A DNA stretch of 63,715 nucleotides, filler included, from Choristocarpus tenellus KU-1152 (lineage: Eukaryota > Protista > Phaeophyceae): assembly GCA_964200185.2 (NCBI GenBank). It is 9 parts of 9 records of this genome, joined end to end, with 100 filler letters (N's around TTAATTAATTAA, not from the genome) between each part and the next. Parts side by side here need not be neighbours in the genome. Positions count along the whole stretch, not along the records: positions 26,924 to 29,618 come from CAXNAD020025578.1; 8 more parts are not named here. One strand, written 5' to 3'. How positions within the stretch are numbered: position 1 is the first letter of the stretch; every line of letters starts with the position of its first letter. Both the position numbers and the translations under genes were made by a program. Under the pieces are notes generated by a model, which saw nothing but the letters and a program-made list of their open reading frames with translations, searched no databases and was not told where the DNA came from. This document shows, piece by piece, positions 20,620-29,618 of this stretch.

Positions 20620-23600
20620 ATGGGGATGGTGGAGGACAATACTGCAGTCAAAAGTGGCACAGTGTTCATCCGTCGGTCTTTATCATTGCTTGTACCTGAT
20701 CGGTGAGTGGATCATACCCGATTTTGAGTCCAGTTTGCCTTCTTTGCTGAACGGAACACCAATGTTGCAGGTTATCCATTCCCATCATGTGGGTTGGGTT
20801 ATTCTCTCATTCGCAGCACTTGACTCCGTTATACTTCGAGCGTCTCTCTCTCTCTCTCTCGCTCTCGATATCGCTCTCGCTCTCGATATCGCTCTCGCTC
20901 TCATTCATGATTGGCACTTAAGAGGGGTGTAGGTGTCTGTGGAAAATTTGGTTGGCGAGTGGAGACCACATATCTGTATCCTATTGAATACCCCCCCCGC
21001 CATTGCGTCGATGGGATCATAATGTCTTTTGATAGAGGATCGAGGAAAATAACTCTCACATATCCCATGCTGGCCATCAATTGCTATATATTTTTTTTAG
21101 CTACGAGGACGCATCGGCTTTCCGTCAAACAGAGTGGGTGGATGTGAACACCATATCGGTGACCATAATCGCAAATGTGGCCTTGGCCCTCCTCTGCCTG
21201 GCCTACTTTTGGAGCTCGCGTAAGCACAATGCAGGGTACTTTTCTAGCAAAAGGCGTCGTCTTCCTTCTAGAACCCCTCCAAACCTTCCATGTGGTGGAT
21301 TTTTCTCTTGGATCTGGTAAGGACTACTAAGGGAGCCAGTAGATGATGAAAAGGCTGATAGAAAAGAGATGTAGTATTCTATGAGGAAGAAGCAGGGATT
21401 GCACTAGCTCAATCTTTCTTATTCCTTAAAAGGAAGCAAAGGTATCGGTACTACCTTGAGCTTGAGTGAGTGATTTGCACCCCTATCCAACTGCAATCAT
21501 TAAAGCTTCGTCATCCTCCTCCACTTGTGCAGGCCCCTGCTGGCTATGACAGAGGATGATATCTTGCGATACGCAGGCTTTGATGCTGTGATCTTTCTCC
21601 GTTTTTATAAGCTTGCATTTAAGGTCAGTGGTTTCAGTGCTGTCGAGGGTGTCGATCACACTGTGAGGTGTGAGGGGAGAATGTTGTATTGGGTGAGGGG
21701 TGGCACTCACATGGTAGTGGGTAAGGATATATCTGAGGTGTGATGAGCTCCATTAAAAAATATATATAATGGGTATTATTGATGATCCATGCCATTGCAT
21801 CGAAGCTAGATTTCAGACGTGGTAAAGTGAATTGGCAGTATCTTAAGGTCGATAGGTATATTACCTTTGTACAATTAGTGAAATGCTTTGGCTGTGTGCT
21901 CCTGGAACCTGATTGGATGATTGTGTGTGTGTGCGTGTGTGAGTATTTGATAAATATAGCACATGCTTTCCATCTTTGCCATGCGACCAGTTTTTGTACC
22001 AAAGAGCACTCACTGTGTCCTCCTCTCACTTGCTGTGTGTTGTGTGAAGGTGTTTGGAGTGTTCTCATTTTACGGGTTGCTGGTGATCGTACCAGCCAAT
22101 ATACAGGGGGGAAGTCGGTCGAGCAGTTATGAGTACCAGACAAACATCAACACCTTCAACCGACTGTCCATGTCCAACATACAGCATTATGATCCACGCA
22201 TGTGGTTGCATGCCTTGGGAGTGTATGGTCTGACTGGAATCACCATGTATTTCCTTATCAAGGAATACAGGTGTGGTTGCAGAGTCTCCTTATCCCCGAA
22301 AGGCATCAACAACTGTAGGAAGTTTTATTTTTAAGAAATATTATAGGAACAATTTCTGACTGTTTCTGATCTAACTTTCAGGGTTCGTTCTTGTATAGTG
22401 GGGGGAAAAAAACCTTCCCAAATATTTAGTTACAATGATGGTAATGATTATGGCATTGTGAAGTTAATTATTTTTTTTTTAAAGCCTGGATGGAATGTTA
22501 GGCACATTGATGTAATAAAAAGCAAGGTCAGCAACAGTTTGATCCATATTGACTAATGATCTAATGACAAGTTTGTGAGAGCAGGCATTGATATTGATGT
22601 TTTTTGACATAGAGGGGTTTTTCATGTTCCGAAAAAGGAAGTAAAATAGTGAAGTGCAATACCGGATGCATCTCTCTCCAAGTGTCCTCTCCTCAATTTT
22701 TTTTCTCAGGTTTTATACAACACTGAGGCACAAGTTCATGAGACGCAAGGCTGCTCACCTGCGAACCATAATGGTGGAAGGAGTACCCCATGAAATGAGA
22801 TCCAACACCAAGCTCTTCACATATTTCAATACGCTGTACCCTGATGAGGTACACTACTAGTGTTGTGCCATTTATCTTATTTGTTTTTTGTGAAGTATGT
22901 ATTGACAAGATAATGGTTCTGGTTTGGTCTTGACTGACTGCTCTTTTTTGCTGCGTGAAGTAGGAGGATTTGATACGATTTTGAGACCATGTCTCGAGTG
23001 AATTGACCAGTTTCTTTGTTGCAATTCAGAGTTGATTGGTTGATTGATCGGTCCAAGCTCTCTTCATGGTTTGTTATTAATATGGTGTGTGTGCGTAAGG
23101 CATCTGTACTACACGTGTATGCATAAGGTCCTCTCTGTGTTCAGCATGTTCTCATTCCCATTTTTTTGTATTGTTGCCTTATGCTGTGTGCTGTATGCTG
23201 TGTGCAATTGGATCCTACTCTCTTGGTGACATAAACATGTAACTGTATTTGGTGGTGTTTTGGTCAGGTTGTGAGTGTCCATACACCCCAGGACATTTCT
23301 CACCTCAGGAAGCTCCTGGATTTAAGGCATGAAGTCATTGCACAGCTTAGGGGAGCTCTGGAGCGCAAGGCAGTCAGAGGGCAGGAACAGTACCACACTT
23401 GTGAGTAGTTTTTTATTTTATTGTTTTTGTTCTGGGCACCAAGGGTGAATTCGTTTGTGCAGTTTTAGGGTTATGACCTAGAGGTACATATAGTTTTAGG
23501 GTTATGACCTAGAGGTATACATAGTATTAGGGTTATGACCTAGAGATATATATAGTATTAGGGTTAAGACCTAGAGGTATATATAGTATTAGGGTTAGGG

Positions 23601-26403
23601 TTAGAGGTATATTTTTTGACAGTGTTTAGATAAGGTCTTGGCTTGCTGCTTCAGGGCATTTCAAGATCTGAAACCTTTATCATGTTTGACACAGTATTTT
23701 GCAGCAGCATTTTTGACGATTCTTATGTTGGTTGCTATAGCATCCATTTGCCCTGCTGTTGAATAAGAGAGCGCCTTGTACCTCCTGTAATGGTGTGTAA
23801 TGGTGTGTGATGGTAGTGGGCATACGTGGCCTTGGTCAGCGAGTGAACACAGTGGACTATTGCTCACTCCGGCTACAGCGCCTGAATGAAGCTATCGCCA
23901 AGGAGCAGTCTAAAAAGAAGAGGAAGCAGAGGATGGCCTATGCTGTCAGGGCACAGGTCAGTTTTTTCTTTTGGGCTGAGACAATCGTTCCAAGAACGTG
24001 TTGAGTGTGTTGGCGTATTTATGTTTTTTCTTTTGTGGAGTGGAGTGGATGTGATGCATGCATTAGTTCGGATATTGATTTTTTTTCTCAGCAGTACCTT
24101 GAGGCTGCAGTCAACACCAATGCCGTGCACCCATTTGTAGCAAGTATACCCTATGTTTGATGCCCTTGGACAAGAAGAATGAGGAGGGGAAAAGGAATTT
24201 AAGTATGAGCAAAGAGTCAGGGGTACATGGTGTTTGTCCAGTGTGCTGAAACTGGTCATTGCCATCTAGTAGTGAACGCAAAGATTCTGTCTGAGAGAAG
24301 TGGATGTACGCTTGTATTTATCATTGCTGTGTTGGTACTTTTTAAAGATAGTAGATACAACATGCATGTGCTTGAACTAGGAGAATTATTAGAAAGTACA
24401 TATTATTTGAACATCTTTTTTATTTCCATTTTACCAACGTGTCTTGATATTTTTTATATACCGTCTCCCCTTCTCTCTTTCTATTAATAGTCTATATCTG
24501 TGGTGGATATGAACTACGACTTGGGATCTATGCCGGAGAGAGAGGCTGGCCCAATCGAACGGTTGGTTTTAGAAGAAGATGGCCATTCGGAGAGTGATTC
24601 AGAGAGCAGCAGCAGCAGTCATGGTGTAGTAGTGAGGACCAGGAGATCTGGAACAGGGGAGGGGCAGTGGTGGAGTGGGTCAGGTGGCTCAGGCACAGCA
24701 AAGGTACTGCCACGATCTCCACGTATGTCTATGGATCTACCAAGGACTGGGGATAGTGCCAGGAATGTGAGCCCCTCCCCTCGTATCTCTTTGCAGCTCT
24801 ATGGCTGTGAGAGGTGGATTGCTGCACTTCTTGAAGGAAGTGTAGCAATTGTTGTGGACTGGGAGTGTGCTGTTTCTTGTCTTCATTATCTCTTTGGCAT
24901 GTGTTCATGATGGTGTCAATGATTGACTTTGATTGGTTGGTTGACTGATTAGTCTTGGTGCTTTCCTTGGCATTTGAGATGTCATTCAGGACCTGGAACA
25001 TTTCTGTGTGGATTATTTCCATCAGCACTAGCACCACCTCACCACTTTAATGAGGACATGGTCATTAAGTCATGATGAATATATTTATGTCACAGTGTTT
25101 TAGTACATGCTATATATGCTAAGTTAGGGTTAGTGTGAGTTGTGAGTTGTGTGTTGTGTTGACATCTCAAGTACAAATTGGCAACTCTTTCACCCTCTCC
25201 TGTGTGGTACTCTCAGAATGTACTTTACACAGCAACGTCTGTCTCCTCCCACTCAACACAGCGGGGCTGGGTACAGAAGAGCCCTACCCGTTCAGACCAC
25301 CATAGGAGAAGGAGCCAGGAGCATGTAGTCAACGGAGGTCGACCTCGGAGTGCGTCTGTACCATCAGAGAGGACATCACTCTTGACCACAGAGATGAAGG
25401 ATTTAGATGCCTTGGCCACCAAGTTACCCCAAAAGAGAAAGAGGAATCAGGAATCTGACCAGGCACCAAGGGCTTTTGTGATCTTTAAATCTTTCGGGGC
25501 TGCTACAGTGGCACGCCAGGTTTGTAAGGCATGTCTGTATGTATTTTTTTTAGGGCCGGGAAGGTGGAAGGGATACCAGCTTTTTGCATCACATGCTAAT
25601 ATTTCATGATTGCCACATTATTATTATTATTATTATAGGTATGAGGTAAATAGCGCTGGACCTCTCACTTGGATTATGGAATCCGACTCAATTTTTTTCA
25701 CTCCCATGTTGGCCAAGAAGTCATTAAAGTGTGGTGAATTGTAGCTATTAACTTACTAGGATATGATTAAATCACAATTAATCAAAAGATATCAAAATCT
25801 AGAGGGATTACTATGGGGGAGGGGTTGTGCTCTGGAGAGTGTGGACTACTATACAAGCAAGATCACTGTGTACTCCCATCATAAGGACATGAAGGCACCA
25901 ATTTTTTATCATCTTTTTGTCATATTTTTTTGTAATAATCCCATAACTACTTTCTCATCATGTATACCTCAGACCACATCAGCTTGTTTTTAGTATTTCT
26001 GTATTCATGTATTTGTTGGTCAAACACCCCTGTGAAGGTGCCTTTTTGTAGGTCCTTAACTATACTAGTAACAGTAGTGCTCACATGTATGGTTAAAGTT
26101 GTCTACCACTGCACTCTTTTTATGGATACTCTATTTTTAAGGGTAATGTGATGTGCTGAGGATGGAAATGTTTGATTCCACATTGAAGTTTTTTTTTTTT
26201 TAATTTGTGTGTCCTGTTCGTTCCTTTTTGTATTTTTTTTGTATATTTGGAATGTCTGTCTTTCCACATACAACTTTGGATGTTCTCTATCCCATTTTGA
26301 TTTTTAGGTTCTACATTGTGCTCGACCAGGGCGGATGGCTGCTATGGCTGCACCAGAACCGAGGGATGTGTACTGGAAAAATATCTTTGTCACCCGCAGG
26401 CAG
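20620..26403 (+). CDS. OSCA/ERD4/TMEM63 (CSC1-like) mechanosensitive cation channel, 3'-partial, 10 exons seen
   Basis: Exons give FFSWIWPLL..EDDILRYAGFDAVIFLRF, LVIVPAN, FNRLSMSNI, RMWLH, RTIMVEGVP, YFNTLYPDEV, AFVIFKS...ARQ and AAPEPRDVYWKNI: RSN1_TM and PHM7_cyt motifs. Confidence 0.93.
23460..23610. repeat. Intronic ~32-bp minisatellite containing TTAGGG (ATAGTTTTAGGGTTATGACCTAGAGGTACAT)
   Basis: About 5 tandem copies; the last reads TTAGGGTTAGGGTTAG. Confidence 0.85.
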
Positions 26404-26923: not shown

Positions 26924-29618
26924 CAGACAGGGAGGATACGGGCGAAGGGGGTTCTGTCGGCAGTGTTCCTGGTGCGGAAGAAGAACAAAACGGCCATGGA
27001 GGGTGGAACGCGGGCGTTTGCTGTACTGAATGCAATCCTCCACCTACGTCTCAGTGAGTAATGTAGTTGTAATGGTGCACGTGTAGGGCGGAGTGTAATT
27101 AATAGCGCAAGATTGGTTTCCATCCAATCCCCCGAACGGATAGATACGTTGTATCTTTTCAGCGGCGCATGCCATTGAATCCATGGTATGTTGTGGGGTT
27201 CCTCTATGTGCGGCGCTGCGGTTGCTACCCCCACGTCTCTTTATTTGCCACTGTCCGATTGTGTGTTAATGCATGTACATCAACGACTGTTGTATCTCAC
27301 CTGTACTACTTCGTACTGTTTTGCGCGGCCAATTTCGTGGTCCTTCGTAACCGTGGATCCCCACGTTGCGCTGTTGCGCCCAATTAATGATCTGGAAAAA
27401 TACTATACTGTCTGTTTAACGCTCTGATTCGATGACACACGCGACAGGTATTCGTGCCCAAAGTGCTCCATCACGCATATGGGCGAGTGTGCCTACCCGG
27501 AGATTAGAGACGACAAGAGGCACAAGGATCGATTATGTATCAAATGCCCCATGGCACAGGAGGGCAGTGAAGGTTCTGGATCAGTGGGGAACGAAGCGGC
27601 GGGTCGGGGCAGGGGCAAGGGCAAGGGCAAGGGTAAGACTCGCGCAAGGAGCGCGGGCGGGTCACCCATGACGCAAAGCCTTTTACGTCCCCCCTCACGC
27701 AGCGAAACGGCCGACATGGAGAAGTGCATGTGGGTCTCGGCATGGTTGCACATTATACAGACACAAAAGACGTCTCTGCGTGTTTGTTTTCACGTTGGTT
27801 TGCACATAGGTCTTGACTGCTTGTACATCATGTGAATTGCTCGTCCTTTGTACCTTGGATGTGTCGTTTTTTTGGAGGGTTCCATGGGCCATGGAACTTA
27901 GTGTTTTGACGTCTACCCTACTTCCACGAGATGTATCTGATGAGTCTGGCATTGTGGAGGGTACGGCCTGACATTTTGGAGATGCCGTGGAAATACTGTC
28001 AGGAACTCACTTAATGAAAAGATTGCCTGCACCGTAGCTTACTATGCCGTCCTTCTTGTCGTGCTGTCTGTCTACTGTGTCGTGTGTCATGATGTCCGAG
28101 CAGGAGTGAGAACACTGCACTACACGATCTTTGCCCTCTCGACCCCACGGTATCCATAGACAAACTTGGTGGTTTCGCCTTCCGCAACGCACCAAAGCTC
28201 GCCATAGTGTCCATTGCCGCCGAGCCAAGACTCCTCATCGACGAAGAGGCGACCAACGCACACCTGCGCGAGGTGCTTCAGTGCTTGCGGCCTAAGATGC
28301 ATCCTCAGAGGGCACCATCGCGCTCATTGTGCCCCACCCGTGGAAAGCGCAATTACACCGCCTAGTAGGTGAGTTGCAGAGTTCGCAAGTGCTGGAATAC
28401 GAGGTATATTGCGAGAGACTGATGCGATCCGGGTGACCGTTATCATTCCGTCCGTGTGCCGATCGAATATTGTGCGACCGTTCAGGAGATGCGGATTAGG
28501 TCGTGTGTATTCCTTTTTCACTTTCCCCGTGTTGTTTCATGTCCTTCGTACCTTCTACTTCCTTTTGTGTTGCTTGCTCTTTCCCCGCGGCAACTATGTA
28601 CTTATTTGTTTCATTGTTCGCCAATCGCATGCTGGCATTACTCGTCTTCACTACATTGTTTTTGCCACATTTACTTCTATTATTACTTAATTTCCTATTG
28701 TTTGCAATTTTTGCATTGGTTATTTGCCTTGCGTTCCACACTCATTATACTATTATAACGTTAGTGGTATGAGATTTCATGAATCCCTATGATAACTACT
28801 TGTGTGATGTCACTGTCAAGTTTGACGCATGCCGGACCCATGCGCTCGCGCCCGCCTTCTCTTCATTCAGAGGCTCTTATTGTGTCGAAGGTGGGCTTGA
28901 TTGTGGAGGATCATCCCCTAACCCTAATATACAAGATGAGGAAGGGGGGGCGCCCTCAATTAGGCACAGATAACCATCTCAGATTTTGTCAGGACATGAT
29001 TCTTCTCGCGCACAACGATGGGACAATGTTCACATGCAATAAGCGAGTCACCGTCAACAACATCTTTGGCCACGAGCGTGATGCATCTCCTCCGGCACCC
29101 CAAACCATGTTGGACGTCGAATACGAAGGTGTTGCAACGGACATCCCCATGAGGGCCCTCCACTTCCTCGTTAACAGGTTCGTTAATAACGTCACACACA
29201 TCCTTCTTCACAGAAGCAGCGATTTTTTTTTGTATAGGTGTAGGACATCGTCAAGCAGTAACAGAACGAGTTGGGTAACCGTTCAGGGGCGTCAATCCAT
29301 CCCACGAGTTTGTTTCCCGAATCGGTACATTAAGTGTCAAAATGCACCAAGAGTGTGTTGCCCTGTATCGGAACGTTACTCATACATTGCGACATGATGA
29401 ATCCGTGCGCAATACAATATACCACGTTAGGGATAATTTACGAGCTGCCCTCCTATGATAGATAGGTACACGAATGTTGGGGACACCGTCGTCTCCTACA
29501 GCGCAGAGAGGCACAATGTGGTGGAGGCAGCCCTTGAACGGAGCAGGAGGGTGGAGGTGTTCGTGTCCAACGCGGCGTCAAAGGACGAGGTGAAAGAGAA
29601 GATGGACACATCCTTCGG
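26924..29618 (+). pseudogene. PHD-like C4HC3 zinc finger + basic GRGRGK motif + degenerate beta-class N4C/N6A DNA methyltransferase-like domain; 6 exons, two 2-bp frameshifts, both ends truncated
   Basis: Exons 26924-27053, 27448-27723, 27878-27960, 28104-28368, 28871-29177, 29466-29618. Segments LREVLQCLRPKMHPQGTIALIV, GLIVEDHPLTLIYK, DMILLAH, NNIF and IPMRALHFLVNRYTNVGDTVV...AALERSRRV follow the N6_N4_Mtase motif order. Confidence 0.6.

Follow-up and report, generated by a model that had tools for sequence, protein, structure and literature searches.

The present study suggests that a brown algal gene family expected to write DNA methylation instead encodes a methyltransferase fold that has lost its catalytic motifs. 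The piece analysed (positions 26924-29618, from CAXNAD020025578.1, Choristocarpus tenellus KU-1152, assembly GCA_964200185.2) lies within a window of 63,715 nt, by which we mean the whole stretch of joined DNA. The piece is very probably an internal part of a decayed copy of the accessory gene that a giant Sola1 DNA transposon carries. In the alignments, the SAM-binding and catalytic motifs are lost in every family member examined, and the protein is in all likelihood non-catalytic and would not methylate DNA. The sole amino-methyltransferase (MTase)-like gene reported so far from brown algal transposons was proposed to be a writer of 4mC/6mA, and our study corrects this expectation. By the canonical mechanism, the members examined could write neither mark; this is in keeping with reports that brown algae lack DNA methyltransferases.

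Six-frame translation and a listing of splice sites gave a spliced gene on the plus strand, both ends of which are cut by the piece edges. An earlier note on this DNA, made from the sequence alone, had read six GT-AG exons. The spliced gene and its GT-AG introns stand, but the exons number five, separated by four introns, as given by spliced joints in the RNA-like run X4, by splice sites conserved in the homologous loci L002 and L006, and by the distant copy L087, whose exon-intron structure is identical. Exon A (26924..27053, +; 5′ end cut) encodes an acidic/glycine linker and the first cysteine pair of a zinc finger, CTEC (27022-27033), with an X4 joint at 27051>27447; exons upstream of it exist in L002, L006, and L087. 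Intron 1 (27054..27447, +; GT-AG, phase 2) lies inside the finger at a position identical in L087, and the finger is likewise split in L010 and L011. Exon B (27448..27729, +) carries the remainder of the C4HC3 finger (27455-27547) and the basic GRGRGKGKGKGK linker (27602-27637), and is followed by intron 2 (27730..28103, +; GT-AG, phase 2; X4 joint 27730>28107 and a loose end at 28100). Exon C, the third exon (28104..28368, +), starts the MTase fold with strand 4, which ends in the degenerate motif IV SIAAE (28210-28224), a helix, and strand 5, as assigned from the family alignment and the secondary structure of a homolog model. This exon opens SENTALHDLCP; the GVRTLHY reading of the earlier note was in the wrong frame, and one of its proposed frameshifts does not exist. 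Intron 3 (28369..28870, +; GT-AG, phase 1) is matched by the X4 joint 28366>28869 (GT..AG, depth 345). Exon D, the fourth (28871..29177, +), holds strands 6-7 with the conserved GGRP..HL[RK] loop, an invariant His, FTCN, and a motif-X-like P..AL.FL.NR. Intron 4 (29178..29465, +; GT-AG, phase 2) is matched by the joint 29175>29464 (GT..AG, depth 363) and is spanned by the P0001 and P0068 gene models. Exon E, the fifth (29466..29618, +; 3′ end cut), contains strand 1 with the degenerate motif I SYSAERH (29494-29514) and strand 2, in which the motif II Glu is replaced by Val (29563-29565); its register comes from the family alignment, an hhalign match (E 2e-4), and reference motifs.

In run X4, exons were covered to depths of thousands, against tens to hundreds for introns, so the family is transcribed and spliced. 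Since the joints stem from family copies, the support that they give to the four introns applies to the family and not to the piece copy itself. The observed joints also rejected a mini-exon at 27931-27960 in intron 2, which they do not use, and a donor at 28404. Further X4 joints without GT-AG ends (26949>27575, 26982>27517, 28288>28962, and 28308>28870) probably stem from copies with deletions or from chimeric assembly of paralogs. Intron 2, itself about 92% conserved, contains a 19-nt near-perfect palindrome (27879-27897) identical in L002 and L006, which is possibly a binding site or a chance occurrence. Besides, two introns of one gene (L006 467-728 and 4503-4844; L002 213-471) share a 260-nt segment that contains an 80-nt tandem unit and was not found in other loci. 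The sole frame break in the piece is a copy-specific 2-nt (AG) insertion at ~28307..28310 (+), which shifts the frame so that reading stops near 28366. The insertion is absent from L002, from L006, and from most covering contigs (280/311 by depth in X1; 3213/4877 in X2). The piece copy is thus a broken duplicate, a pseudogene, of which we see the middle of the gene.

The finger in the piece, CTEC-x9-CPKC-x3-H-x3-C-x15-CIKC, has a C4HC3 set of eight ligands shared by L002, L006, L087, L010, and L011. Its six exon B ligands are invariant in all of these, and the finger together with its intron is conserved in L087, L010, and L011. The versions in Ectocarpus, Pylaiella (P0055), and L007 lack the finger. 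The spacing C-x3-H-x3-C departs from the canonical PHD spacing C-x4/5-H-x2-C, and the two finger halves, searched exon by exon, had no Pfam PHD match. Therefore, the PHD-like label given earlier holds for the C4HC3 ligands but not for the spacing, and is a resemblance by ligand pattern only. The basic GRGRGKGK linker was confirmed in the piece.

Gene models and loci, among them those of Ectocarpus, Pylaiella, and Scytosiphon, show that full-length homologs of about 1,100 aa comprise a ParB-like domain, a helical region, an acidic and then a basic linker, the MTase fold, and a tail, which is about 400 aa in P0047, P0052, and P0054. The ParB-like domain is N-terminal and lies outside the piece; it is present in L087, of the same subfamily, and in L003 and L008-L011. 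Its LDG..R motif is invariant in five homologs, its profile matches to ParB/DGQHR are weak (PHROG ParB, E 0.0025), and a single-sequence fold of this part reached pLDDT 41. A conserved C-terminal tail domain with no Pfam match is common to all long members (L087 6459-7355, P0054 248-389, L004, L007, and L010).

Sequence searches against Pfam, NCBIfam, PHROGs, and PDB gave no MTase match, an Atlas search with exon D alone had none either, and no PF01555 match exceeded the gathering cut-off in the piece, exon by exon, or in natural full-length homologs. Folds were made from the natural homolog records P0047, P0052, and P0055. The AlphaFold model of P0047:408-671 is of low confidence (pLDDT 51); with it, Foldseek ranked beta-class MTases first (RsrI, HpyAVI, and CcrM; best E 4e-4). 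The exhaustive aligner VIA also placed beta-class MTases first, at a middling Z of 6.8. The Atlas model of P0055 aligned with N6_N4_Mtase (PF01555) clusters at TM 0.64-0.74 over 205-233 residues. Furthermore, hhalign matched the C-terminal half to YhdJ-like enzymes (E 2e-4 to 6e-4), which sets the register of motifs X-I-II. The C-terminal domain is accordingly predicted, from models of homologs, to adopt the beta-class amino-MTase fold, a permuted Rossmann fold with motif order IV to X-I-II. Thus, the Cys/His finger, basic linker, and C-terminal beta-class fold of the earlier reading all found support.

The motif IV signature [DNSH]PP[YFW] is absent in 9/9 exon-3 rows. At the end of strand 4, where DPPY would stand, the piece has SIAAE and homologs have NVGAF, NVGAY, NIAAF, DLTRE, or NPGAE. 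DPFxGxG of motif I and the Glu of motif II are absent in 10/10 exon-5 rows; the former is replaced by an xGAE/xSAE type and the GIE glutamate by a hydrophobic residue in most members. The positions assigned earlier to the rewritten motifs IV and I agree with ours, motif I by the hhalign alignment (E 2e-4) and motif IV by strand position rather than a significant profile alignment. Under the established amino-MTase mechanism (PMC4738411), a protein that lacks the prolines, SAM loop, and motif II Glu should be incapable of methyl transfer. What stands in their place varies from lineage to lineage, as would fit a release from catalytic constraint. Could the protein still be an active amino-MTase, or another transferase, with a rewired site that marks its own element, as proposed for Sola1-1_Ec32 of Ectocarpus? 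Apart from the published prediction (PMC12477816), this idea can draw on the first residue of motif IV, which is N/D/S in all members, on an F/Y four residues on in one subgroup, and on an acidic residue that is nearly invariant in the loop of motif I. However, neither proline survives, nor does the Gly-rich SAM loop or the Glu of motif II that binds ribose; the replacements vary by lineage, and we consider an active enzyme improbable.

Across about 35 divergent members, the surface-loop residues GGRP, HL[RK], and FTCN rank among the best conserved, and the best-conserved residues of the fold lie in the strand 6-7 loop. Mean column identity in the family is about 20%. L087 (43-74% identity) retains the same five exons and phases with open frames and splice sites intact. 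Over the MTase exons, omega between the piece and L087 was about 0.35 at about 60% identity, which indicates purifying selection on the MTase-fold domain. Long selection as a pseudo-enzyme, as suggested in the earlier note, is supported by this value and by the family-wide loss of motifs. One may argue that the fold is a relic that serves the ParB-like domain only as a folded spacer or for dimerisation, and that it has no nucleic-acid or chromatin role of its own. The moderate omega, the low column identity, and the loss of the finger in several lineages would suit such a relic; the conservation of the surface-loop residues would not, and we give the idea slightly less credence than an active enzyme.

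Four public runs mapped to the piece revealed a high-copy repeat, with 2,262 (X1) and 2,669 (X2) contig variants at 80-99% identity. Two C. tenellus contigs align to the whole piece at 91.6% and 88.9%, their introns as conserved as their exons, which points to that species or a close relative as the origin. Omega from copy to copy was 0.5-0.8, which fits the expectation for decaying transposable element copies. Thus, the family is multicopy and recently amplified. A search with exon D returned 41 proteins of 1.8 billion, two of them low-complexity chance matches; the best E value, 1e-25, argues that the feature is not a product of chance. The named homologs of this exon are all brown algal, namely Choristocarpus tenellus (closest, 85%), Ectocarpus, Scytosiphon, and Pylaiella, in line with the algal origin assumed earlier. 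The family spans Discosporangiales to Ectocarpales, a range wider than published that includes the earliest-branching brown algal order. In ENA assemblies, the P0028 cluster (L010) has 131 near-identical members on contigs of up to 2.2 Mb; this finger-bearing family, from a different alga, was amplified recently.

Transposase exons lie just upstream on the opposite strand, head-to-head with the accessory gene, in L005, L009, and the finger-bearing L010; in L004, a DUF7869 transposase (Pfam E 5e-22) precedes the accessory gene on the same strand. By eye, the transposase motifs at these four loci correspond to those published for Sola1-1_Ec32. Thus, the suggestion that the gene is transposon-borne is upheld by a Sola1-type transposase beside homologs. 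No transposase was seen in the fetched flanks of the piece copy or of L002, L006, L007, L008, L011, and L087, the C. tenellus contigs being short. Terminal inverted repeats (TIRs) and 4-bp target site duplications were likewise not seen for the piece copy, for the short C. tenellus contigs, or in four other loci, and the fetched flanks of homologous loci had no convincing TIR pair. If the genes were instead a host multigene family, domesticated or ordinary, or the cargo of a virus, this would account for the lack of a demonstrated TIR and for four homologous loci without a visible transposase in the fetched DNA. This explanation is nevertheless very unlikely, given the thousands of 80-99% variants with neutral-like decay, the 131 cluster members on many large contigs, the head-to-head transposase at three loci, the spliceosomal introns, and the exclusively brown algal names of exon-4 homologs.

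Some features of these loci deserve mention. The Pylaiella copy at L004 9926-12846, downstream of the same-strand Sola1-type transposase, looks 5′-truncated, with no ParB or exon-3 equivalent. Tandem duplications of 131 and 211 nt (L005 9777-10034; L001 2167-2581) lie between the transposase and the start of the accessory gene; they may recall the repeats beside the ParB-type PAG3 of Plavaka or may be assembly artefacts. In L009, a Peptidase_C48 (Ulp1-like) gene (20883-24195) follows the accessory gene 4.5 kb downstream and may be extra transposon cargo or belong to the host. A 357-nt "repeat" in the same locus was taken as runs of N, with no blastn self-match, and was discarded.

Overall, the best explanation, and in our judgement a fairly probable one, is a non-catalytic DNA/chromatin-binding accessory protein of the Sola1 transposon. 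As to its actual role, we infer that it may serve as a self-binding chromatin or transposition helper, for which we see about an even chance. The ParB/helical part, by DNA loading, and the retained basic strand 6-7 loop of the MTase fold would bind the element's own DNA. The MTase fold would act as a dimer and nucleic-acid-binding module, dimerising as beta-class MTases do, and the finger and basic patch would contact chromatin. In this manner, the protein could help the element to evade silencing, to remain expressed, or to load its transposase. A bolder proposal, tentative and on balance doubtful, is that a ParB clamp, pseudo-methyltransferase, and zinc finger have been kept for hundreds of millions of years as a sequence-specific anti-silencing or insertion-guidance device derived from a phage-type ParB-methylase. 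The accessory protein is a candidate factor in the persistence of giant transposons in a lineage that has lost DNA methylation and PRC2, and with them 5mC and H3K27me3 silencing.

Beta-class and MT-A70 enzymes act as dimers. METTL14 is such a dimer case (PMC4738411), and the earlier note envisaged a METTL14/DNMT3L-like partner of an active MTase. Such an inactive subunit would pair with an active amino-MTase encoded elsewhere, by the host or by a different transposon, and direct 4mC/6mA towards the element. The red algal Plavaka elements, which carry an N6_N4_Mtase gene (PF01555) and a ParB fusion gene, also speak for such pairing. However, no active MTase was found in the fetched flanks, no plausibly placed ORF with canonical motifs was found in loci L001-L011, and all family members examined are degenerate. 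Moreover, DNA methyltransferases are reported missing in brown algae except DNMT2 (PMC13076208), with DNMT1 only in Discosporangium, which weighs against the partner idea. We therefore regard such a partnership as having little chance.

Among known systems, the beta-class amino-MTases (M.RsrI, CcrM, M.MboIIA, M.PvuII, and bdelloid N4CMT) share the permuted Rossmann fold in the order IV...X-I-II-III, but their DPPY/SPPY, DPFxGxG, and GIE motifs and the Pfam PF01555 match are absent in the family described here. METTL14 and the second MTase domain of fungal clade 4 are likewise dead MTase folds, the latter fused with PHD and other chromatin domains; in contrast to our family, where none was found, an active counterpart is known for them, either a partner protein or the first domain (PMC4738411). 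The inactive N6A-MTase domain of the DIRS1 retrotransposon is similarly a transposon-borne fold that has outlived its catalytic residues, but it is a PCIF1-like unpermuted fold of independent origin in a retroelement polyprotein (PMC4738411). Red algal Plavaka PAG2/PAG3 belong to giant DNA transposons with ParB-like and N6_N4_Mtase domains, for which self-binding and modification are proposed (10.1101/2025.02.11.637652). There, however, the domains sit on two genes (MTase with SET; ParB with 2OG oxygenase), the MTase is Pfam-detectable, and the element is EnSpm/Plavaka (10.1101/2025.02.11.637652).

The closest system is Sola1-1_Ec32 of Ectocarpus, a 21.5-kb element with a gene of 1,104 aa for a ParB-like and N4C/N6A MTase protein opposite its transposase (Dinatale et al. 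2025, PMC12477816). The published prediction is that this protein makes 4mC/6mA; binding and modification of the element's own sequence were suggested, and the gene was called Ectocarpus-specific (PMC12477816). An undescribed DNA-modification system, as the earlier note had it, is not supported, because this ParB and MTase accessory gene of Sola1 was already described (PMC12477816). The gene type is already known; the literature searched mentions neither the family-wide motif loss nor the finger subtype. By description, our family resembles Sola1-1_Ec32 in its brown algal host, its ParB-like and amino-MTase parts, its homologs of about 1,100 aa, and its position opposite a Sola1 transposase with matching motifs. 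It differs from the published account in the absence of the motifs in all members examined, in its C4HC3 subgroup, and in its broader range. Our study thereby widens the family to the earliest-branching brown algal order and adds a zinc-finger subtype to it.
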